Shown: positions 3,095 to 61,198 of the stretch, piece by piece
Numbering within the stretch: the first letter of the stretch is position 1
Layout of the letters: every line of letters starts with the position of its first letter
Virus record (IMG/VR): IMGVR_UViG_3300033997_000243
Location: 62,001 to 126,000 of that record
Strand: one strand, 5' to 3'
DNA length: 64,000 bases
The notes under the pieces: generated by a model
What the model was told of the DNA's origin: nothing
What the model saw: only the letters and a program-made list of their open reading frames with translations
The model's database searches: none
Program-made: the position numbers and the translations under genes

Positions 3095-3113
3095 GGGCTT
3101 CGGCCCTTTTCTT
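3093..3113 (+). terminator. Intrinsic terminator with C(UUCG)G tetraloop
   Basis: AAGGGC-TTCG-GCCCTT followed by TTCTTT. Confidence 0.8.
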
Positions 3114-3124
3114 TAGGTGAGCTT

Positions 3125-3457
3125 ATGAAAATTCTTGTGAGTCTTTGTACAAGTGTAGACAGTATTCAAAAAGAAAATGGTAAACTTGTATACAAGGGAA
3201 TGACTTTCATTGATTTTGATAAACCCATTGAAATAAAGGATAAGCGCTACAAACGTGCGGTATTAGCACGTAAAGGAAATAATTTTAAACTAATAAAGTA
3301 TGGCCATGTTGACTATGAAGATTTCACTACTCACAAAGATCCTGAACGTAGAGAAAATTTTCGCAAAAGATTTCGTGGCATCTTAAAGTCTAATGGTAAG
3401 CCAGCTTATAAAGATAAATGGCAAGCTGCGTATTGGGCATACAACGATCTTTGGTAG
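3125..3457 (+). CDS. Basic protein with leader; DUF5754-like family (recalled from large DNA viruses)
   Basis: MKILVSLCTS leader; YGHVDYEDFTTHKDPERRENFRKRF...AAYWAYNDLW. Confidence 0.65.
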   Translation: MKILVSLCTSVDSIQKENGKLVYKGMTFIDFDKPIEIKDKRYKRAVLARKGNNFKLIKYGHVDYEDFTTHKDPERRENFRKRFRGILKSNGKPAYKDKWQAAYWAYNDLW

Positions 3458-3465
3458 GGAATTCT

Positions 3466-4143
3466 ATGAAGGTTAATATATTAATTTCTGAATCTGCTTC
3501 GACAACTCGTGCATTTAAAGCAAAACTTGCTGAATTAGGTTCCTTATTGTTTGAGTCAGATAATAAATTGATCAGGGAACTAAAGGTAACTAAACCTTTT
3601 GTTAAGACCATTGATGGATTAGCTTATGCTATCCGACTTGCACGTAAATCACACGTTGCTCAAAATAAAGTTGAAGAGTTAGCTACTTTGCTCGGAGTCA
3701 ATCCAGCACATATAACTTCTGCTGTGGATAAAACTGGCTATTGTCTCCACTTTAGCTCTGGTGCTGCTACCAAAGCAATTGCTACATTAAAAAGAATGGC
3801 TAAAGCCAAATCAGTTGGAGCACCTGCTAAAAAATCTAAGACCGCAGACTTCGGTTGGAATGTAGCAATCCAACAAATGACTCGTCAGAAAGAGAATATT
3901 GTTCAAGATAAAGGTCTTGAAGTTGCAGCTAAATGTAAACTGGCTTTTGCTGACCGCATTGATAAGCTTGTTGCTAAAAATACTAAAACACATGATGTCA
4001 GAAGTTTTAGTATGGAAGTTGTTGACTATCCACAAATGACAAGCACTGTCGGCACAGACGAAGTTTATATAACTGTCAAACTAAAGCTGGATCAAAAATC
4101 TCGACCTTCTCAGGGTCGTCCAGTGAAAAAAGAATTCAAGTAA
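3466..4143 (+). CDS. Basic hypothetical protein with shared leader
   Basis: Start moved from 3418 to ATG 3466 (SD AGGGA); begins MKVNILISESA. Confidence 0.75.
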   Translation: MKVNILISESASTTRAFKAKLAELGSLLFESDNKLIRELKVTKPFVKTIDGLAYAIRLARKSHVAQNKVEELATLLGVNPAHITSAVDKTGYCLHFSSGAATKAIATLKRMAKAKSVGAPAKKSKTADFGWNVAIQQMTRQKENIVQDKGLEVAAKCKLAFADRIDKLVAKNTKTHDVRSFSMEVVDYPQMTSTVGTDEVYITVKLKLDQKSRPSQGRPVKKEFK

Positions 4144-4200: not shown

Positions 4201-5421
4201 ATGAAAATTCGTGTATTCACATCAACCTCAGCGCGTAAGCGTGATATTGTAGTAAATCAAGTTGGCACCAGTTTTGAAGTGTCTGTTGACGATAAAGTTC
4301 TGGTTAAGTTTACTGGCAAAGCAACACCTGATACTATTACAGAAAAATTGCAAAAGAAAGAATTCAATGGCGCAGAAATCAAACGTGTGTTTGCTCAGAT
4401 TGCTAAGCTTGGTAAAGCTGATTCCCGTGAAGTTAAGGTTAAACCTTCAGCTGCTGATTCAAAAACAAAGAAACAGCTTTTCTCTGATGCAACTGTACGT
4501 TTGGTGGCAAAAGAATTTCCAGAAGCTATAGCTACTTTAGCTCAACTGAATAAAACAGATCGTGCTAAAGCCTATGCCAGATCGCATCATGGCCTTGGTA
4601 TGGGTGTTCGGAATTTTATGCGTTCTAAGACCACAGAAAAAGCAGTGAGAAATCCTGTCACTGCCGACGATATTTGGTCAGAAGTTTTAGATCGTGCAAT
4701 CGAATTGAAACTTTATAAAGATACGGATGCTGATGTTTACCAGTTAGCAAAAATAACTGGTAATGCTGTAAAAGAGTTGGATATGGTTTTGTACAAAGAC
4801 GCAGATTCAGTGAAGAAATTAGGAGCCTCTATTGCACGTAGCTTGAAAAAAGCTTTCGGTGATGGCATGACTATTAAAGCTCGTGTACGTGAGCACTTTA
4901 GTCCGTCACCTAATGTACCTGCACACAGATACAATCACTTTGCTGTTTCCTTACCTATCAATATGATTACTGTAGGCGGCAACAATAAACTAAATATTTA
5001 TGTCGGTACTGGCATTGTAATGATCGAAGAGGATGGGCCGAAATCTACTAAGGTTACTAACCATAAACTGGTGAAAGGAACTAACGCAGAAGTTTTGGAG
5101 GCTATTACCAAGAATCTTAAGATCAAAACCAATACTGTTGAAAAACCTGCGTCAACAGGAAAATTCAATGAAGCAAGTCAATATGTTGTTGATAAATTCG
5201 GCAAAGATCTTAAGGCAAAAGGTATTGACTTAATACCTACACCTGGTGGCATTAGTTTTTATCATCCACGTCGCGGAACCGTTAAAGCACGTTTCGGAAT
5301 CAAAAATGGTAAGATGATGCACATGACTAAGTATAAGGCCAGTTTTGGTGAAACTTTTGACATGAGTAAACCAATTAGTAAAGCTGTTATCAGCAAAATT
5401 GTCGCTCCCTTACTTAAATAA
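4201..5421 (+). CDS. Basic hypothetical protein with shared leader
   Basis: SD AAGGA; starts MKIRVFTSTSA. Confidence 0.8.
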   Translation: MKIRVFTSTSARKRDIVVNQVGTSFEVSVDDKVLVKFTGKATPDTITEKLQKKEFNGAEIKRVFAQIAKLGKADSREVKVKPSAADSKTKKQLFSDATVRLVAKEFPEAIATLAQLNKTDRAKAYARSHHGLGMGVRNFMRSKTTEKAVRNPVTADDIWSEVLDRAIELKLYKDTDADVYQLAKITGNAVKELDMVLYKDADSVKKLGASIARSLKKAFGDGMTIKARVREHFSPSPNVPAHRYNHFAVSLPINMITVGGNNKLNIYVGTGIVMIEEDGPKSTKVTNHKLVKGTNAEVLEAITKNLKIKTNTVEKPASTGKFNEASQYVVDKFGKDLKAKGIDLIPTPGGISFYHPRRGTVKARFGIKNGKMMHMTKYKASFGETFDMSKPISKAVISKIVAPLLK

Positions 5422-5434
5422 TTTTTCCATAGGA

Positions 5435-5603
5435 TAAGGAGGTGATCCATATCTCGTGGTAACTACACCACGTTAAAGAAGGTAGTAGAGCAACCGCTCC
5501 GCTGCATAGAGTCAGTGATTTGATCAACTTTAACTGGAGATCATTATGAAGGCACTTCTTATCTAAACTTTATTTCAAGAGCATTCTTTTGGGTGCTCTT
5601 TCT
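5435..5603 (+). ncRNA. Candidate structured small RNA or leader element (16S 3'-end complement, pseudoknot, mini-ORF, terminal hairpin)
   Basis: TAAGGAGGTGATCCA 5435-5449; stem CGTGGT/ACCACG whose loop ACTAC is complementary to GTAGT 5482-5486; hairpin AAGAGCATTC-TTTT-GGGTGCTCTT 5577-5600. Confidence 0.45.
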
Positions 5604-5629: not shown

Positions 5630-6286
5630 ATGAAAATTCGTGTATTCATTTCAGAATCAAGTCAAGAAGATGAAGAGTTTCAAAGAATTTGCGCGTTGTA
5701 CCTTGAGCGTCAATCCGTAGTACGTGCTTTAGGTGAAATCGACCGTGTGGTAAACGCCACAACTCAGGACGCAAACGAAATAGAAAGTGATAAAAGCTTT
5801 AATACTCGTAAACGAAATCTTCAGGAAGAGGTTGCAAAGTTTGATCTTGAAATCTCAAATCTCAAACGCAGAATTTTATACGGTACTTCTCCGTGGAAAA
5901 GTAAAGATAGCGAGTGGGTTAAAGAATTTATAGCAAAATGTTCTACCTCACTTATTGCCAATCCTTCACTAATACAAGCGAATAATGAAACCCAGTATAT
6001 AGAAGTAGCTTCAAAACTTCGCAGAGAGTTACTTGATAGTGTTAGAATGATCGCAAACTTTAAAAGCGAAAATATAGCTAATCTGTTATACGCTTGCGCT
6101 AAGTTTTATTTGGATATGTCAAACAGCGGTCAAAGTTCTTTATCTCAAGTTACGTATTCGGCTGCTGTAACCGAATTGCATAAAGTTCTTGAGTTATATG
6201 AACCTATTCTTATTCGTATATACAAACACGGCATTCGTAAAGATTACATGAAAGTGTTTGCTCAGGTTTTCAAGAATTTTGGTTAA
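5630..6286 (+). CDS. Helical hypothetical protein with shared leader
   Basis: SD AAGGA; starts MKIRVFISESS. Confidence 0.8.
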   Translation: MKIRVFISESSQEDEEFQRICALYLERQSVVRALGEIDRVVNATTQDANEIESDKSFNTRKRNLQEEVAKFDLEISNLKRRILYGTSPWKSKDSEWVKEFIAKCSTSLIANPSLIQANNETQYIEVASKLRRELLDSVRMIANFKSENIANLLYACAKFYLDMSNSGQSSLSQVTYSAAVTELHKVLELYEPILIRIYKHGIRKDYMKVFAQVFKNFG

Positions 6287-7230: not shown

Positions 7231-8931
7231 ATGAAAAAGCCGATTAAAGCCAAGGTTACGCCTGTGCATGATAAAAATGCAGCCAAGCCAAAAGCTAAGA
7301 AACCAGTTGTAATTCCGAATAGCATTAAGTATGCTGCGGAAAAATCGAAATCTCGTGTTGTGTTTGCTGTTCCAGGCCGTTACATTTTAAAAAATCGTCG
7401 TGCAACCTTCGCTATTGTGCGGATTGCAGATGACGTTAAAATGAGTCCAAGCGTAGCCACTAAAGTTTTCAAGGTTACTGCAAGTGATATGGATCTTACA
7501 CAAGAACAAATCTTTGCACTTGAGCCAATTGAAATGGATTCTTTGAGTGCTGCACCTGGTGCGAAAGTTTCTGGTCTTGACTCAAAGATGGGCAAGAAAA
7601 CACATGCACCAAATACCTTATCAAAAGGTTGGTGGGTTTTCCGTAAAGGTAATGACGGTAAAGTTGCAAAAGCTTTTGCTGGTGGCCGCATCAGTGGTCG
7701 TCGTATCTTATCTTTAATCGATCCTTCTCAAGCACCTAAGCCAAAAACTGAAGTGATTGACGAAACCAAAAAAGCTCCGGCCAAGAAAACTGGTGCTGAA
7801 TTAAAAGCAGCTGGTCAAATCAAAGCTTTGCAGACTGAGTTCAAAAAACTTGGTGGCGAACTTACTGCTGGCAAAGAACGCTTAACCACTTTACAACGTG
7901 CAACATCTAAAATTGCTTTGAAAGAAAAGCTGAAGAAAATAATTGCCCGTCGTAAAGAAATTTCTGCTGAGATTAAAGCTTTGAAATCTGGTGAACCTGC
8001 ACCAAAAATTAATCCTTCAGCTAAGGCTCCTGCCGTTAAGAAACCTGCTGCTACAGGAAAGATCACTAAGTCTGATATTAGTGCGTTACCTAAACGCCAA
8101 CAAACAGCTTATATGAATCTGAAGGAAAAAGGCACGGCTATTGTTCAGGCTATTAAAGCACTGAGAGAAAAGTTGACTAAGTTGAAAACAAAACCAGCTA
8201 AAGCCAAAGTAGAAGCTGAGATTGCTAAGCAAACAAAACTTCGTGATAAGGTTGTAAAAGCTTTAGCTGACTTCCATGAAAAAATTCGTAATGGAAGTGC
8301 AGGTCAGGTAGTTCCTGCTCATAAACAAAAACCTTCAAAATCACCTGAAGCTGGTAAAGCAGTTCCTCCTGCTAAAAAACCAAAGGCTGAGCCAGCATCT
8401 AAAGCTCCGGCAGCTAAGCCAAAAGCTACGGTTCCAAATGCTGAAGTAAAACAGGCCAAACAAGAAGTTAAAAAGTTGGATCAAGAAATTGATCGTGACG
8501 TTCAAACAATAGATCGTTTGAAAGACATGCTTGAAAAAACAAAAGACGTTAATCGTCGTAAAAAACTTCAGGCCAGCATTGATGGTCTTAACAAGCGTAT
8601 TGATTTAAAAGCTCGTAAGCAAAGTGGTGCGAATAGCGTACTGCAATCAAAAAGCAGTGAGCAAATTTACTTCCCTACTTACTCAGCTGCCGTTCAACAT
8701 GCCGTCGATGGTTTAGCTTCAAAAGGATTAGCCTACGAAGCTGCCGATTTTGAACGCATCGTCACACATGGAACAGCAAAACCTGCTGCTGGTAAAACAA
8801 CTCGCTTTGTGTTGCCAATTAAATCTAAAGGCGGCTTGATCAGTAAGAGCGCTAAAGGTTTAACTGTTGCTGTTTATCATGCAGATGATCGCACTCAAAA
8901 TCCATTTGAATTAACTCACTACGTTTCTTGA
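7231..8931 (+). CDS. Large Lys/Ala/Pro-rich (histone H1-like composition) putative DNA-condensing head protein; paralog of 8964
   Basis: SD AAGGA before ATG 7231; PAKK/PAAK repeats, coiled coils; N-terminal ~150 aa align with 8964. Confidence 0.7.
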   Translation: MKKPIKAKVTPVHDKNAAKPKAKKPVVIPNSIKYAAEKSKSRVVFAVPGRYILKNRRATFAIVRIADDVKMSPSVATKVFKVTASDMDLTQEQIFALEPIEMDSLSAAPGAKVSGLDSKMGKKTHAPNTLSKGWWVFRKGNDGKVAKAFAGGRISGRRILSLIDPSQAPKPKTEVIDETKKAPAKKTGAELKAAGQIKALQTEFKKLGGELTAGKERLTTLQRATSKIALKEKLKKIIARRKEISAEIKALKSGEPAPKINPSAKAPAVKKPAATGKITKSDISALPKRQQTAYMNLKEKGTAIVQAIKALREKLTKLKTKPAKAKVEAEIAKQTKLRDKVVKALADFHEKIRNGSAGQVVPAHKQKPSKSPEAGKAVPPAKKPKAEPASKAPAAKPKATVPNAEVKQAKQEVKKLDQEIDRDVQTIDRLKDMLEKTKDVNRRKKLQASIDGLNKRIDLKARKQSGANSVLQSKSSEQIYFPTYSAAVQHAVDGLASKGLAYEAADFERIVTHGTAKPAAGKTTRFVLPIKSKGGLISKSAKGLTVAVYHADDRTQNPFELTHYVS

Positions 8932-13205: not shown

Positions 13206-13252
13206 TAGTTACTGATTAAAACTTGAATCAAATTTTTGTGGAGAAATACAGT

Positions 13253-14347
13253 ATGAAAACCAATTTACAAGTCGGCGCTTCTTATCAACTGAAGAACGGC
13301 GCACCTTTGCACGATCTTCGTTTTGCCGGACAAGGTATGGCTGCACTTTCATCTAACGGTGAAATTAACGCATCAAGCAATGCAGATCTGTTAAAACAAA
13401 TTGGCCAACTTTTACAATCAGTATCAAGCGGTACTGTTGTTCAAGCTGCAACGCCTGATTCTTTCCTGTCATTATCTGCCGAGCAGAAACGTGATATTTT
13501 AGTTGCCGCAAAAGCATGTCCTAATAAGTGGGCTGCTTTAGGTGCTCACATTGCTGCTGACGTTCGTGAACAAGCAAGTCGTCAAGGTTTTTCACGCAAT
13601 CTGTGTGTGATCAATAACCTGAAGCAAGGTGAAACTCAAAAAGTTCCAATGCCTCGCCATCAAGCTAAAGCCGTTTTAGCTACTGGCCCAACTTCAATTT
13701 CTTACCAAATGATGCGTGATAAATATTTCACGCCACCAGAGTTTGAATTGAAAGCTGCTGTTCGCGTGAACAAACTGGATTTGGGTCAAGCGACTCACGA
13801 TCTGTTAGACCACGCTTACAACGATGCTGTTGAAGGTATGATCACTGCTGCTGACCGCGTGTGGAAACGTGCTGCTGATGCAACTGTAGGTAAAGCAAAT
13901 ACTTTAGCTGCTTTCGCTGGTGCATTTACTCCTGCCGTTATCGCTCGTGCTTCAACACAAATTCGTGATTGGAACTTACCAGTAAGTCGCGCTGTTATCG
14001 CAAACAGTTTTTGGGAAGATATTCAATCTGAAGGTGCCTGGGCCAATACACTGACTCCAGTATCTCAGTACGAATTAGTTATGACTGGCCGTGTTGCAAC
14101 TATCTTCGGTCTGGAATTAACTACTGACGGTTTCCGTCCTGAAAACCAACGTGTTCTGTCTCGCGGTGAAGCGTACATTGTTGCTGATAATGAATATCAC
14201 GCAACTTTAGGTTCTCGCGGTGGCATTGAATCTACTCCGACCGATGGTGCAAACCAAGGCGATACAACTAAGGGCTGGTTACTGTCAGAGGTTATGTCTC
14301 TGATAATTCCAAATACTCGCTCTGTAGTTAAAATGCAAAAGCTGTAA
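13253..14347 (+). CDS. Major capsid protein (HK97 fold)
   Basis: Start moved to ATG 13253 (SD GGAG); SRQGFSRNL..L.QG...P, ATGPT...FTPPEF, AADRVWK and TG.V.TIFG.EL.TDGFR motifs recalled from PaBG/Y3-type jumbo MCPs; position. Confidence 0.85.
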   Translation: MKTNLQVGASYQLKNGAPLHDLRFAGQGMAALSSNGEINASSNADLLKQIGQLLQSVSSGTVVQAATPDSFLSLSAEQKRDILVAAKACPNKWAALGAHIAADVREQASRQGFSRNLCVINNLKQGETQKVPMPRHQAKAVLATGPTSISYQMMRDKYFTPPEFELKAAVRVNKLDLGQATHDLLDHAYNDAVEGMITAADRVWKRAADATVGKANTLAAFAGAFTPAVIARASTQIRDWNLPVSRAVIANSFWEDIQSEGAWANTLTPVSQYELVMTGRVATIFGLELTTDGFRPENQRVLSRGEAYIVADNEYHATLGSRGGIESTPTDGANQGDTTKGWLLSEVMSLIIPNTRSVVKMQKL

Positions 14348-15691: not shown

Positions 15692-17317
15692 ATGTCTTTA
15701 GCGCCTAACAATCCGAGTGCGGGCGTCTATACTTCCGAGAACGTGATACCAGAACAAATCGCTTCAACAAGCGTTAGTACCGGTGTCATTGTAACGGCTG
15801 CTGATCGCGGTCGTGTAGGACAAAGAATCTTTGTCGGAAATAAAGGCGACCTGCGTACAAAGTTCGGAAAAAATAATCCAAAGCTTACAAAAGCTTTGAA
15901 TTGTGCTGAACACTTTTTAGAAGAAAGTAACGCACTTTACGTTACTCGTGTTGCCCGTGATTCAAAGTATGCTGGCATTTTAATTCGCACAGTATCAAAC
16001 TTTGCTACCACAATTAAACTTTCTGCTGGTATTTCAGATCCAACCAGTGTTGGATTGGGTGAAGCTGACATCATGTTGGTTTATGCTGATAACCAAGGAA
16101 AGTGGGGCGATGATCTTTACGTAGTAATGTACCCTGATGTAGATGATGTTGATGGACATCAGTTCATTTTTGAAATTTACGAAGGAACTACTTCTACTGT
16201 TCCGGCTGAGAGATTCTCATGTACTACATTCTATAAAAAGAATGACAGTGGTTCTCAGTTGTTTGTCGAGGATGTTATTAATAACAGAAGTAAATTGGTT
16301 AAAGTAAAATTCAACCATGAGCATTTTGTTTTTGCATCCAATGATTCTCCACTGTTAGTAAACGCAATAATTGGCGGCCCATTTGATCCAGTTTCTGGAC
16401 AAAACAACGGACAATTATTTGGTGGCGATAACGGTTTGCCAATTACTAACGGTGATTTAATTAACGGCTGGAATTTATATGAAGATCATGAAAAAGTTGC
16501 TGTAGATATTCTGATGTCTGCTGGCTACACAGATCTTCCTATTCTGCATACAATCAACGACATTGCTGCTCGTCGTTTAGATTGTATTGCTGTTTTAGAT
16601 GCGCCTGAGATATTAACTGACGCTTCTGACTTAGTTAACTTCAGACGTAACACTTTAAATCTGAATAGCAGTAGTGCCGCACTTTATACTCCTTACCTGA
16701 AAATGTTGGACACAGATAATTCACGTTCTTATTTCGTTCCACCTTCAGGTAAAGTTGGTGCTGTTTACGCAAAAACAGATAGTATTGCACGTAGTTGGTT
16801 TGCTCCTGCTGGTTTGAATCGCGCTATTCTTTCTGGCGTTGAAGAACTTGGTAGTGTGTTCAAGCAAGCTGATCGTAACATGCTTACTCAAAACCAAATC
16901 AACTTTATTATTGAGAAGCAAGGTTACGGAAATGTAATTTGGTTAGCTGATACACTTTATGCGAGTGGCGGCCCATTACAAGACATTGGTGTTCGTCGTT
17001 TACTTGCGATCTTACACCGTATTGTTCGTCGCGCTCAACTTCAATCTGTTTTCCAACCTAACGATGATTTCTTACGTCGTAAAATTCGTGACGATATGAT
17101 TGCATTACTTGCACCTATTCGTCGTGATCGTGGTTTGGATTGGTACGAAGTTGTTTGCAGTCGTGTTAATAACCCGAACGATCAAATTGCAAACGGCGAT
17201 TTAGTTTGTGATGTGTATTTAGATCCTACACGTTACACTAAACGTATCCACTTGAATGCAATCGTGCCGAAGAAAGGCGCTATTTCGTTCTCTGAAACTT
17301 TCTTGGATGCTGCCTAA
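15692..17317 (+). CDS. Contractile tail sheath protein
   Basis: N-terminal PSAGVYTSE; PPSG.V.AVYAKTD...WFAPAG.NR; NQINFI; IGVRRLL; C-terminal GDLVCDVYLDP. Confidence 0.95.
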   Translation: MSLAPNNPSAGVYTSENVIPEQIASTSVSTGVIVTAADRGRVGQRIFVGNKGDLRTKFGKNNPKLTKALNCAEHFLEESNALYVTRVARDSKYAGILIRTVSNFATTIKLSAGISDPTSVGLGEADIMLVYADNQGKWGDDLYVVMYPDVDDVDGHQFIFEIYEGTTSTVPAERFSCTTFYKKNDSGSQLFVEDVINNRSKLVKVKFNHEHFVFASNDSPLLVNAIIGGPFDPVSGQNNGQLFGGDNGLPITNGDLINGWNLYEDHEKVAVDILMSAGYTDLPILHTINDIAARRLDCIAVLDAPEILTDASDLVNFRRNTLNLNSSSAALYTPYLKMLDTDNSRSYFVPPSGKVGAVYAKTDSIARSWFAPAGLNRAILSGVEELGSVFKQADRNMLTQNQINFIIEKQGYGNVIWLADTLYASGGPLQDIGVRRLLAILHRIVRRAQLQSVFQPNDDFLRRKIRDDMIALLAPIRRDRGLDWYEVVCSRVNNPNDQIANGDLVCDVYLDPTRYTKRIHLNAIVPKKGAISFSETFLDAA

Positions 17318-44240: not shown

Positions 44241-46164
<1,924 letters not shown>

Positions 46165-60046: not shown

Positions 60047-61198
60047 CTATTCAGCGATATATTGAGTCGGTAAACCTAATGTCACACATGAGGCCATTGC
60101 GTTAAAGCAAGCTCTATTTATTTCATTGTTATGATCCACGAAATTCTTTTCATGAAAAATACCTAAAGTCGTATGGCCACGTACTGCAAATTTACTGATC
60201 GGTTCTGTTGTATAAACAACAGTGACTCCATTCACTACTTCAGTCTTATTTTCATAGTGGTCAAACACGCGAATAAAAATATTACCTTCTCCACCTAAAG
60301 TAATTAACTTTGCTATTTCATAGTTGGGAAATTTTCTCACCGAATCTATAAAAGCATTGGCTTTAACAATATGAGACTTACGCTTAACATCCTGTATATC
60401 TGAAATTATTTTCAGTGGCTTCATTGTTTTGTTGCCTGTGAGTGATCTTAAATAAATAAGGTAGGCAACTGAATCTAAAATATCACCTTTTTCCAGGTGA
60501 GCAATTAATGACTCACGACATTGATCTGCGTTAACAAAGAAACGTCCTTTTCCAAGTTCTTCCTTATTAACGTGTTCTGGAACAACAGACCAACCTTCGG
60601 ACAATCCATATTGTTCTTGCGACTGAAAAAGTTTACTGGCTAATTCTTTGAAGAAAATTGTAAGAACTTCTGTTGTTGATTTGTGCAGACCTTCAGGAAA
60701 CTTCAACGCTTCTCGGCTGGAACCAAAAAATTGGTTAGCATTTTCTTCGTGTCGGGTTTCGGCCTTAATATTGATCAGTGTATTGCGAAAAGACTCACCT
60801 AAGTTATCTATCTCAATTTTAACACCGAATCTTTTAAACAAAGCTTCTGTCACAAAAATCAAACTTTGTCCAAAGTTGTGGTAAATATCGTCCTCGCTTT
60901 TATTCTGAATTGCAACAAGGAAAACATATTGATCCTCACAACGGAGTGTAGGATATTGCACAGTGTTATCCAGAATATTCGCTTGCATACACAAATGAGA
61001 AAGTCTGGTATACAATTGAGCTATTTCAAGTATGTAACGATTGTTGGAATTAAATGCTTTATTCGTAGTATCTATGTGTTCCGACTCTATTACACCTGAA
61101 GTATCTGACAAATATTTCAAATTTTCTACATGCTGATTAACAGCACAAACTGCCGCCACGTATTTCACATACATCTTGTTCCATAAATTCAGATTCAT
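60047..61198 (-). CDS. Hypothetical protein with possible MazG-like helical domain
   Basis: KL......YG...GW...C..SL..HL.KGD.LD...Y..YL resembles a recurrent phage domain. Confidence 0.6.
   Translation of the reverse strand: MNLNLWNKMYVKYVAAVCAVNQHVENLKYLSDTSGVIESEHIDTTNKAFNSNNRYILEIAQLYTRLSHLCMQANILDNTVQYPTLRCEDQYVFLVAIQNKSEDDIYHNFGQSLIFVTEALFKRFGVKIEIDNLGESFRNTLINIKAETRHEENANQFFGSSREALKFPEGLHKSTTEVLTIFFKELASKLFQSQEQYGLSEGWSVVPEHVNKEELGKGRFFVNADQCRESLIAHLEKGDILDSVAYLIYLRSLTGNKTMKPLKIISDIQDVKRKSHIVKANAFIDSVRKFPNYEIAKLITLGGEGNIFIRVFDHYENKTEVVNGVTVVYTTEPISKFAVRGHTTLGIFHEKNFVDHNNEINRACFNAMASCVTLGLPTQYIAE

Follow-up and report, generated by a model that had tools for sequence, protein, structure and literature searches.

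RNAs that bind the ribosome through an extended Shine-Dalgarno (SD) sequence without being translated are known only from isolated cases. The small mRNAs rreB and rreR of alpha-proteobacteria carry a stretch of 16-17 nt that is complementary to the whole free 3' tail of 16S rRNA, including the GAUCC side, next to a conserved hairpin and followed by a terminator (Hahn et al. 2016, PMC5711450). rreB, with a 17-nt extended SD, co-sediments with 30S subunits and is barely translated. The 3' extension of its SD suppresses translation; its overexpression had no effect on growth, and the function of these RNAs is still unknown. The Rfam family CC2171 (RF01867) of Caulobacter looks like one of them. 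The STAB-SD of the cryIIIA 5' UTR, and related ribosome-binding 5' stabilisers in the aprE, gsiB, hbs and ompA leaders, is an SD without a start codon that lies next to a stable structure and stabilises the mRNA by binding the 16S 3' end. In the rpsO mRNA, an SD plus an H-type pseudoknot dock on the 30S platform, and protein S15 traps the subunit before the start codon reaches the P site. Here we describe a conserved, non-coding phage RNA element that begins with a near-perfect match to the mRNA-docking tail of the ribosome and runs straight into a pseudoknot instead of a gene.

The element was first noticed within a window of 64,000 nucleotides, positions 62,001-126,000 of a complete virus record of 319,518 bp with direct terminal repeats. 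The genome encodes a major head protein, a tail sheath and a GroEL, and its head protein is 43-49% identical to those of jumbo phages of Pseudomonas (Lu11, HRDY3, PaBG), Erwinia and Dickeya. The host is therefore probably a Gram-negative proteobacterium whose 16S rRNA ends in GGAUCACCUCCUUA. The phage was assembled from subsurface metagenomes, and relatives occur in wastewater. A preliminary description of the window had reported a 15-nt complement of the 16S 3' end that is followed by an H-type pseudoknot and no normal start codon, and our analysis confirmed this observation. The 15-mer, TAAGGAGGTGATCCA, lies at 5435-5449 on the + strand, in a 208-nt gap between two co-oriented ORFs, and is the exact reverse complement of the E. 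coli-type 16S 3' end. The upstream ORF (4201-5421, +; 406 aa) had no PHROG or Pfam hit and its stop lies 13 nt before the 15-mer and 16 nt before the SD core, while the downstream ORF (5630-6286, +; 218 aa) is also of unknown function. The 15-mer is unique in the whole genome, and none of its 10-mers containing GGAGG occurs anywhere else on either strand; the chance expectation for an exact 15-mer in 64 kb is about 1e-4. In front of 427 ORFs of 100 aa or more in the genome, the longest complement to the 16S tail is 3-8 nt. No ATG, GTG or TTG lies at start-codon distance, and the frame that had been proposed to start at ATA 5449 reads exactly as described.

The pseudoknot and hairpins are located where they had been placed previously. 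The 15-mer is followed by ATCTC (5451-5455), which is invariant in the family and in which AUC sits 8-9 nt after GGAGG, at start-codon distance. Pseudoknot stem S1 (CGTGGT/ACCACG, 5455-5460/5467-5472; whole hairpin 5455-5472) encloses the loop AACTAC, of which ACTAC (5462-5466) pairs across the A-rich linker L3 (TTAAAGAAG, 5473-5481) with GTAGT (5482-5486), the 3' strand of stem S2. Two hairpins follow, P3 (GAGC/GCTC with loop AACC, 5488-5499) and P4 (CGCTG/CAGTG, 5500-5517), the loop of which contains a conserved AUAG. The + strand of the gap folds far better than shuffled sequences (z = -4.6), whereas the - strand does not (z = -1.8). Downstream of P4 there is a mini-ORF with its own SD (5536-5566, +; GGAG 5536-5539, ATG 5546, MKALLI*, stop 5564-5566), the 3' part of which (CACTTCTTATCT, 5553-5564) can pair with the extended SD in the minimum-energy fold. 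It is followed by a terminator-like hairpin (AGAGCA.../...TGCTCT, 5577-5603, +) and TTCT. This hairpin is weak and was not reported by a consensus terminator scan, but it occupies the position where cultured relatives have a strong intrinsic terminator.

We next examined whether the element is conserved in relatives of the phage. The upstream 406-aa protein has eight homologues at 53-86% identity, and we inspected the contigs of four of them, L233 (86% identity), L234 and L235 (71%), and L236 (55%). In each, the stretch from AGGAGG to CTGCATAG is nearly invariant while the surroundings diverge; the 5437-5510 core is almost invariant even where the flanking protein is only 71% or 55% identical. 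In L236, and in a 260-kb phage from the same sample (L240/L406), the element lies between different genes, and a 287-kb phage (L399) also carries it. A BLASTN search of GenBank phages with 700 nt around the element found nothing, but a search with the 88-nt core at a relaxed E-value matched Erwinia, Dickeya and 9NA phages. Together with a covariance model built in this study, this search identified the element in the Erwinia phages Alexandra, Y3 and the pEa_SNUABM series, Dickeya phage AD1, a 253-kb complete IMG/VR genome (L408) and its relative L421, and Pseudomonas phage PaBG (E = 2.5e-7). The proteins flanking the element in the Erwinia phages, and likewise in the Dickeya and Pseudomonas jumbo phages, have no detectable similarity to those in the window, and the window's downstream ORF is not homologous to the genes downstream of the element in the Erwinia phages. 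A link to an ADP-ribosyltransferase gene next to the element was rejected: it was seen only in SNU7, and the match is weak. Each genome checked has one copy: the element occurs once in the window phage, Y3 and Alexandra, and GGAGGTGATCC occurs exactly once in the complete genomes of Y3, Alexandra and 9NA, in the last case within the SD hairpin of a looser class described below. The element is an autonomous, single-copy module, and the segment 5437-5517 is a conserved structured RNA.

The shared plan consists of an invariant GGAGGUGAUCC, 2-3 variable nt, AUCUC, S1 of 5-6 bp, a 6-9-nt loop containing ACUAC, ACUGC or ACCAC, an A-rich linker, S2 (GUAGU, GCAG or GUGG) pairing with that loop to make the H-type pseudoknot, AGA, hairpin P3, and hairpin P4 with an AUAG(C) loop. 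The linker has 9-10 nt in the window, Erwinia/Dickeya and L408/L421 copies and 8 nt in PaBG. L408 and L421 keep the SD, AUCUC, the pseudoknot and P3 but lack P4. In contrast to the preliminary description, which presented the full 15-mer, only 11-13 nt of it are conserved. All 15 nt are present only in the window phage and a near-identical contig, while relatives conserve GGAGGTGATCC (11 nt, 5438-5448 in the window), extended to 12-14 nt in various ways; T5435, A5436 and A5449 are not conserved. Close relatives read T-AGGAGGTGATCCA, the Erwinia phages read TGAGGAGGTGATCC or GGGGAGGTGATCCA, and PaBG reads AGGAGGTGATCC. The conserved complementarity therefore lies on the 3' side of the SD core (GUGAUCC), pairing with the part of the 16S tail next to helix 45, which ordinary SDs rarely use and which corresponds to the extension that suppressed translation in the rreB study.

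A GC-rich hairpin with a U-run follows directly in Alexandra, Y3, AD1, PaBG and L408; the consensus scan called it a strong terminator in Alexandra, and it was recognised by eye in the others. In the Erwinia and Dickeya phages this terminator separates the element from the next gene. In PaBG the element lies on the minus strand about 45 nt after gp206 and is the last feature of its transcription unit, followed by terminators and a convergent nudix gene on the + strand, with nothing co-oriented downstream. In the window's close relatives, and only there, the core is instead followed by the tiny ORF with its own SD (MKALLI*, or MRQALLI* in L234) and a weaker hairpin.

All four helices show compensatory changes. 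MAFFT and covariance-model alignments put a gap inside S1 for the window group, which shifts the register, and we therefore counted pairs on a hand-curated structural alignment of nine sequence types. S1 had 52 of 54 canonical pairs with changes on both sides at 5 of 6 positions, S2 had 40 of 45 with 2 of 5, P3 had 33 of 36 with 3 of 4, and P4 had 32 of 35 with 5 of 5; shuffled partners reached the observed pairing in 0, 6, 0 and 0 of 2000 trials, respectively. S1 reads CGUGGU/ACCACG in the window, CCUCGC/GCGAGG in Alexandra, CCGAG/CUCGG in PaBG and CUUCUU/AAGAAG in L408, and the S2 pairing ACUAC:GUAGU changes to ACUGC:GCAG in SNU7 and L408 and to ACCAC:GUGG in PaBG. As the helices were defined by looking for complementarity and the sample is small, this is strong support and not a formal test. 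The element does not appear to be coding. None of the family members has a start codon and no frame is conserved: the 24-aa ATA frame stops after 8 codons in L236, insertions and deletions shift the frames in the Erwinia and Dickeya copies, and peptides read from ATA or ATC are not conserved. The idea that ATCT marks a degenerate start codon (NTG changed to NTA) was rejected because the two preceding bases are any of AT, CC, CA, TT, TA and CT. A 16S 3'-end mimic on the minus strand, or an attP carrying the 16S end, was also rejected, because the flanking genes and the T-runs after the hairpins are on the + strand, G-U pairs and the folding z-score favour the + strand, and the conserved sequence next to the 15-mer does not match 16S. 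Two wastewater runs labelled as RNA-Seq held only contigs of relatives and carry no information on transcription.

To see whether similar arrangements occur more widely, we scanned IMG/VR for exact matches to the 15-mer. The scan returned at least 104 distinct contexts; of the 104 classified, 36 are normal strong SDs followed by a start codon and an ORF, 29 have ATCT within 0-3 nt and no start codon, against about 1.6 expected, and 39 are other. A second scan for GGAGGTGATCCA followed by 0-3 nt and ATCT returned many more, of which 87 remained after removal of GC-rich coding coincidences; 67% of these can form a pseudoknot starting within a few nt of ATCT, against 18% of shuffles. Loop and downstream segments clearly co-vary by eye, for example GCTG/CAGC against GTTA/TAAC, and GCCCGGC/GCCGGGC. 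The neighbouring genes are diverse (head to tail, holin to endolysin, portal, and several just upstream of scaffold and major-head genes), and in about half of the cases the stop codon of the upstream ORF overlaps the SD. This looser class, with an extended SD, ATCT and a hairpin or pseudoknot but no start codon, recurs in Streptococcus and Lachnospiraceae prophage-like regions and in unassigned viral contigs. A Streptococcus prophage subgroup has ATCTTGAC plus a hairpin with a conserved GAAUAGA loop, about 220 nt upstream of the scaffold gene, and 9NA-like Salmonella and E. coli phages carry the SD inside a perfect 8-bp hairpin that has been annotated as a terminator. In bacterial genomes most matches of the 16-mer are coding coincidences, for example a conserved KMWITS stretch read on the opposite strand in Acidobacteria, by our reading an acyl-CoA dehydrogenase, and a gene that by eye is DnaE2-like; the genuine ones look, by sequence pattern only, like prophage-type elements in contigs of Lachnospiraceae-type MAGs, Streptococcus and Patescibacteria.

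No catalogued RNA family covers any of these sequences. Rfam scans of 25 element-bearing loci and of the whole window gave nothing at the gathering cutoffs and only noise at E<=10, ARAGORN detected no tRNA or tmRNA in the window, and we found no description of this element in Rfam 15 or in the searchable literature. The preliminary description had noted a resemblance to the 5' half of the pistol ribozyme (RF02679), in which the loop of a 5' hairpin forms a pseudoknot with a downstream segment after a UUAAA-type linker, followed by a further hairpin, and which is often found in phage-rich samples. This resemblance was not supported: there was no pistol hit even at E<=10 on element regions of 281 and 156 nt, the pseudoknot 3' strand follows the linker directly, no P2 partner is conserved, there is no G-U cleavage junction between P2 and P3, and in relatives the CGUGG/CCACG stem sequence is replaced by unrelated ones. 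The SAM-II riboswitch model (RF00521) scored 13.8 bits (E 0.89), far below its 36-bit cutoff and limited to P1 plus UUAAA, with no hit in the Alexandra copy.

When compared with the rre small mRNAs, which have 16 nt or more of complementarity, the phage RNA follows the same concept but has a shorter stretch of 15 nt in the window and 11-14 nt in relatives. The rre RNAs are chromosomal and carry a conserved ORF of 14-18 codons whose GUG start overlaps the end of the complementarity, whereas the phage RNA has no start codon, no conserved ORF, and a pseudoknot plus two conserved hairpins. There is no sequence homology beyond the SD, through which the window gives a weak sub-threshold hit to CC2171 (10 bits against a cutoff of 75). 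The element shares with STAB-SD an SD without a start codon in an untranslated region next to stable structure, but STAB-SD sits near the 5' end of a specific highly expressed mRNA and extends on the 5' side of the SD (GAAAGGAGG), whereas the phage element extends on the 3' side, is an autonomous conserved structure, and in PaBG and the Erwinia phages lies at the 3' end of a transcript. The rpsO mRNA has a real AUG inside its pseudoknot, needs S15 and controls its own gene. The 3'-UTR-derived small RNAs of Gammaproteobacteria (CpxQ, SroC, NarS type) resemble the element in their position directly after a stop codon, a conserved single-stranded seed at the 5' side and the shared intrinsic terminator of the mRNA, but those target mRNAs through Hfq or ProQ, and here the only obvious target of the seed is 16S rRNA itself.

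What the sequence analysis shows is a conserved structured RNA of the + strand, lying immediately after an upstream ORF, which can form 11-15 consecutive base pairs with the single-stranded 16S tail, has no start codon and no conserved frame, starts a pseudoknot 4-6 nt after the complementarity, and is followed by a terminator in the cultured phages. Its production as a discrete RNA, its binding to 30S subunits and its mode of action are inferred from this anatomy. The element, of about 80-130 nt, begins within 0-45 nt of the stop codon of whatever gene lies upstream and in cultured relatives ends at an intrinsic terminator, and is therefore most likely made as the 3' end of that transcript; because PaBG's copy ends a transcription unit, we favour a 3'-UTR element or a 3'-UTR-derived small RNA over a leader for a downstream gene. 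In this view, the pairing on the 3' side of the SD core would use up the spacer that normally lets a start codon reach the P site, and the compact pseudoknot would sit where a coding region has to thread into the mRNA channel. The RNA would thus dock a 30S subunit tightly but non-productively, as a ribosome trap or roadblock and not as an initiation site, in a geometry that resembles the stalled rpsO/S15 pre-initiation complex and the behaviour reported for rreB. We consider this the best reading, although we hold it with no more than even confidence. The SD is predicted to be partly masked, because AUCUC can pair with GAGGU of the SD (a hairpin of 8-9 bp in Alexandra) or, in the window, forms a weaker pairing or uses GGAUA upstream of the SD, and docking would need strand invasion or prior unfolding; the predicted masking is no stronger than at ordinary start sites carrying the same 15-mer (P = 0.14). 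As AUCUC overlaps the 5' strand of S1, release of the SD by 16S or by a ribosome terminating on the adjacent stop codon could favour pseudoknot formation, an unproven idea. UAUCU is also complementary to AGAUA in the universally conserved 790 loop of 16S, to which we attach little weight. What the phage gains is speculative, with titrating or parking 30S subunits, protecting the transcript end, or marking ribosomes as candidates, and a single copy per genome would need very high expression to titrate ribosomes.

The interpretation given in the preliminary description was thus partly supported. The element is functional and conserved and not a gene start, and its ribosome-capturing or decoy role is the reading that best fits the anatomy but remains an inference. 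A mutated small gene with a strong SD had been named as the alternative that would overturn it, and no relative has ATG, GTG or TTG at the position of 5449, so that this alternative fails. A remnant gene start or chance SD without function, suggested by the gene slot right after a stop codon and by the use of the 15-mer as a normal SD in many phages, is effectively refuted by the near-invariance across diverged or unrelated flanks, the compensatory changes in four helices and the single copy in distant phages. Weak non-AUG initiation, which had also been proposed, is harder to dismiss and cannot be excluded, although we consider it unlikely. In this model the extended SD compensates for a near-cognate AUC codon that IF3 discriminates against, and occasional translation of a few codons unwinds S1 and the pseudoknot or simply holds a ribosome there, giving a leader-peptide-like or start-stop-like switch. 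The invariant AUC, 8-9 nt after GGAGG in every family member, fits this equally well, ATCT is over-represented in the wider class, rreB is weakly translated from GUG, and several members read AUC followed by a stop after 1-3 codons (AUC UCG UGG UAA in the window, AUC UCC UCG UAG in Y3, AUC UAG in class members). However, the ORF length from AUC varies from 3 to more than 20 codons with unrelated peptides, the U and C after AUC are conserved as well, which a start codon does not explain, AUC is a very poor initiator in E. coli, and pairing of GAUCC with 16S removes the spacer.

A cis-acting stabiliser, insulator or standby site of the STAB-SD kind appears similarly doubtful as the general role. 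Here a 30S bound to the start-less SD, together with the adjacent structure, would block 5'-end-dependent decay (RNase J1 in Firmicutes, RNase E scanning in Proteobacteria) or concentrate 30S near the next RBS. This is attractive for the short Firmicute-phage versions, in which a real RBS follows within 15-25 nt, and in many short class members a genuine RBS and ATG follow 15-60 nt after the pseudoknot, several just upstream of scaffold or major-head genes; the small ORF with its own SD in the window's close relatives would also be consistent with it. It does not fit PaBG, which has no co-oriented downstream gene, or the terminator-bounded Erwinia and Dickeya copies, the downstream genes are unrelated, and a single 30S cannot use its anti-SD for both sites. 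For the same reasons of context, the proposed translational switch for the cargo operon is unlikely as the general role. A ligand-sensing or self-cleaving RNA, either a riboswitch aptamer of the small H-type pseudoknot kind or a pistol-like ribozyme, with the SD/AUCUC pairing as expression platform is very unlikely. The weak SAM-II and pistol resemblances of S1 plus UUAAA, the two exclusive folds that arise because the 5' strand of S1 overlaps the AUCUC(CUC) segment, and the invariant unpaired AGA and AUAG loop could point to it, but no model matches, only the pairing and not the sequence of S1 is conserved, no gene is controlled in PaBG, and the genetic contexts are diverse and not metabolic.

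Overall, our analysis describes a conserved, covariation-supported RNA family with the predicted property of binding the ribosome through an extended SD without being translated, the closest described analogues of which are rreB/rreR and STAB-SD. A more far-reaching possibility, unlikely on present evidence but not excluded, is that phages of very different hosts encode a dedicated ribosome-decoy RNA, an initiation-region mimic with an extended SD and a pseudoknot placed where the codon-anticodon helix would sit, which captures 30S subunits much as 6S RNA captures RNA polymerase and could be used to park, protect or silence part of the host's ribosome pool during infection. The element is present once per genome checked in cultured, genetically tractable phage-host pairs (PaBG on P. 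aeruginosa PAO1, and the Erwinia amylovora and Dickeya jumbo phages), with looser relatives in pneumococcal prophages and other viral contigs and an ATCT-containing SD hairpin, one spacer nt beyond the spacing searched, in 9NA-like Salmonella and E. coli phages, so that the question of whether phages use RNA to manipulate ribosomes directly becomes testable with standard assays. Even if the role turns out to be cis-acting, in transcript stability or coupling, the element adds an uncatalogued, widespread regulatory RNA to phage genome annotation, where its locus is currently unannotated, overlapped by a small hypothetical ORF (Y3) or, for the 9NA-type hairpin, labelled as a terminator.

In the window, the RNA core is followed by a 6-7-codon ORF with its own SD at positions 5536-5566, and equivalents of this ORF are present in L233, L234, and L235, which are contigs of the window's relatives. 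The predicted peptide is MKALLI*, and it reads MRQALLI* in the 71%-identity relatives. The last codons of the ORF (CUU CUU AUC UAA) form an anti-SD-like stretch that pairs with the extended SD in the minimum-energy fold. The relatives L236 and L399 have a different small ORF at the same place, while the Erwinia and PaBG copies of the element have none. The covariance model built from the element (R1) also gave a weak hit at window positions 60202-60297 on the minus strand (13 bits, E 0.66), which is most likely noise.

Within the looser class of elements with an extended SD and no start codon, we observed a variant in Streptococcus phage phiARI0746 (L232, positions 3104-3332) and in about 100 related pneumococcal and S. 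mitis prophages. Here, the stop codon overlaps an extended SD, which is followed by ATCTTGAC and a hairpin with a covarying stem and the conserved loop GAAUAGA, and then by two terminator-like hairpins. All of these features lie in a roughly 225-nt non-coding gap upstream of the scaffold and major-head genes. In Salmonella phage 9NA (L377, positions 1495-1522) and E. coli phage AVIO78A (L378), the extended SD is embedded in a perfect inverted repeat (GATAAGGA / TCCTTATC, loop GGTGA) inside a 200-370-nt gene-free region after the capsid gene cluster. In AVIO78A, this repeat is annotated as a rho-independent terminator downstream of a predicted promoter. The repeat may be part of a longer non-coding RNA. 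Another class member, at the locus L088 (motif at position 5587), has a GP20-b RNA (RF03003, 41 bits) about 600 nt downstream, at positions 6184-6249 and just upstream of the next ORF. The roughly 650-nt interval holds no ORF of 50 aa or more on that strand.

Matches in bacterial genomes (loci L255-L374) included recurrent coding coincidences, which have to be filtered out in any motif scan. The 16-17-mer GGAGGTGATCCA-C-ATCT recurs in Acidobacteria and others because the opposite strand encodes a conserved ...KMWITS... stretch, by our reading of an acyl-CoA dehydrogenase. Another recurrent match lies in a gene that, judged by eye, is DnaE2-like.

We also looked at the genes surrounding the element. 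In Erwinia phage pEa_SNUABM_7 (L412), the gene just downstream of the element (positions 7891-8442, minus strand) is annotated as RNA polymerase ADP-ribosylase; it gives a weak partial PHROG match (E 3e-13 to the C-terminal part of a 1480-position profile), and the association is not seen in the other phages. The window encodes a GroEL-type chaperonin (44241-45848, minus strand; PHROG E 1e-179), a major head protein (13223-14347, plus strand), and a tail sheath (15692-17317, plus strand), which place the phage near the Lu11 / PaBG / Alexandravirus jumbo phages. The neighboring proteins of unknown function encoded on the plus strand at 3125-3457, 3418-4143, 4201-5421, and 5630-6286 share an N-terminal MKI(R/L)V(F/L).S.S-type start, which in the 241-aa ORF as listed lies within the first ∼20 residues. 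Only the 110-aa protein hits Pfam (DUF5754). Genes next to the element in the Erwinia phages share this type of start as well, suggesting a paralogous gene family typical of this jumbo-phage group.
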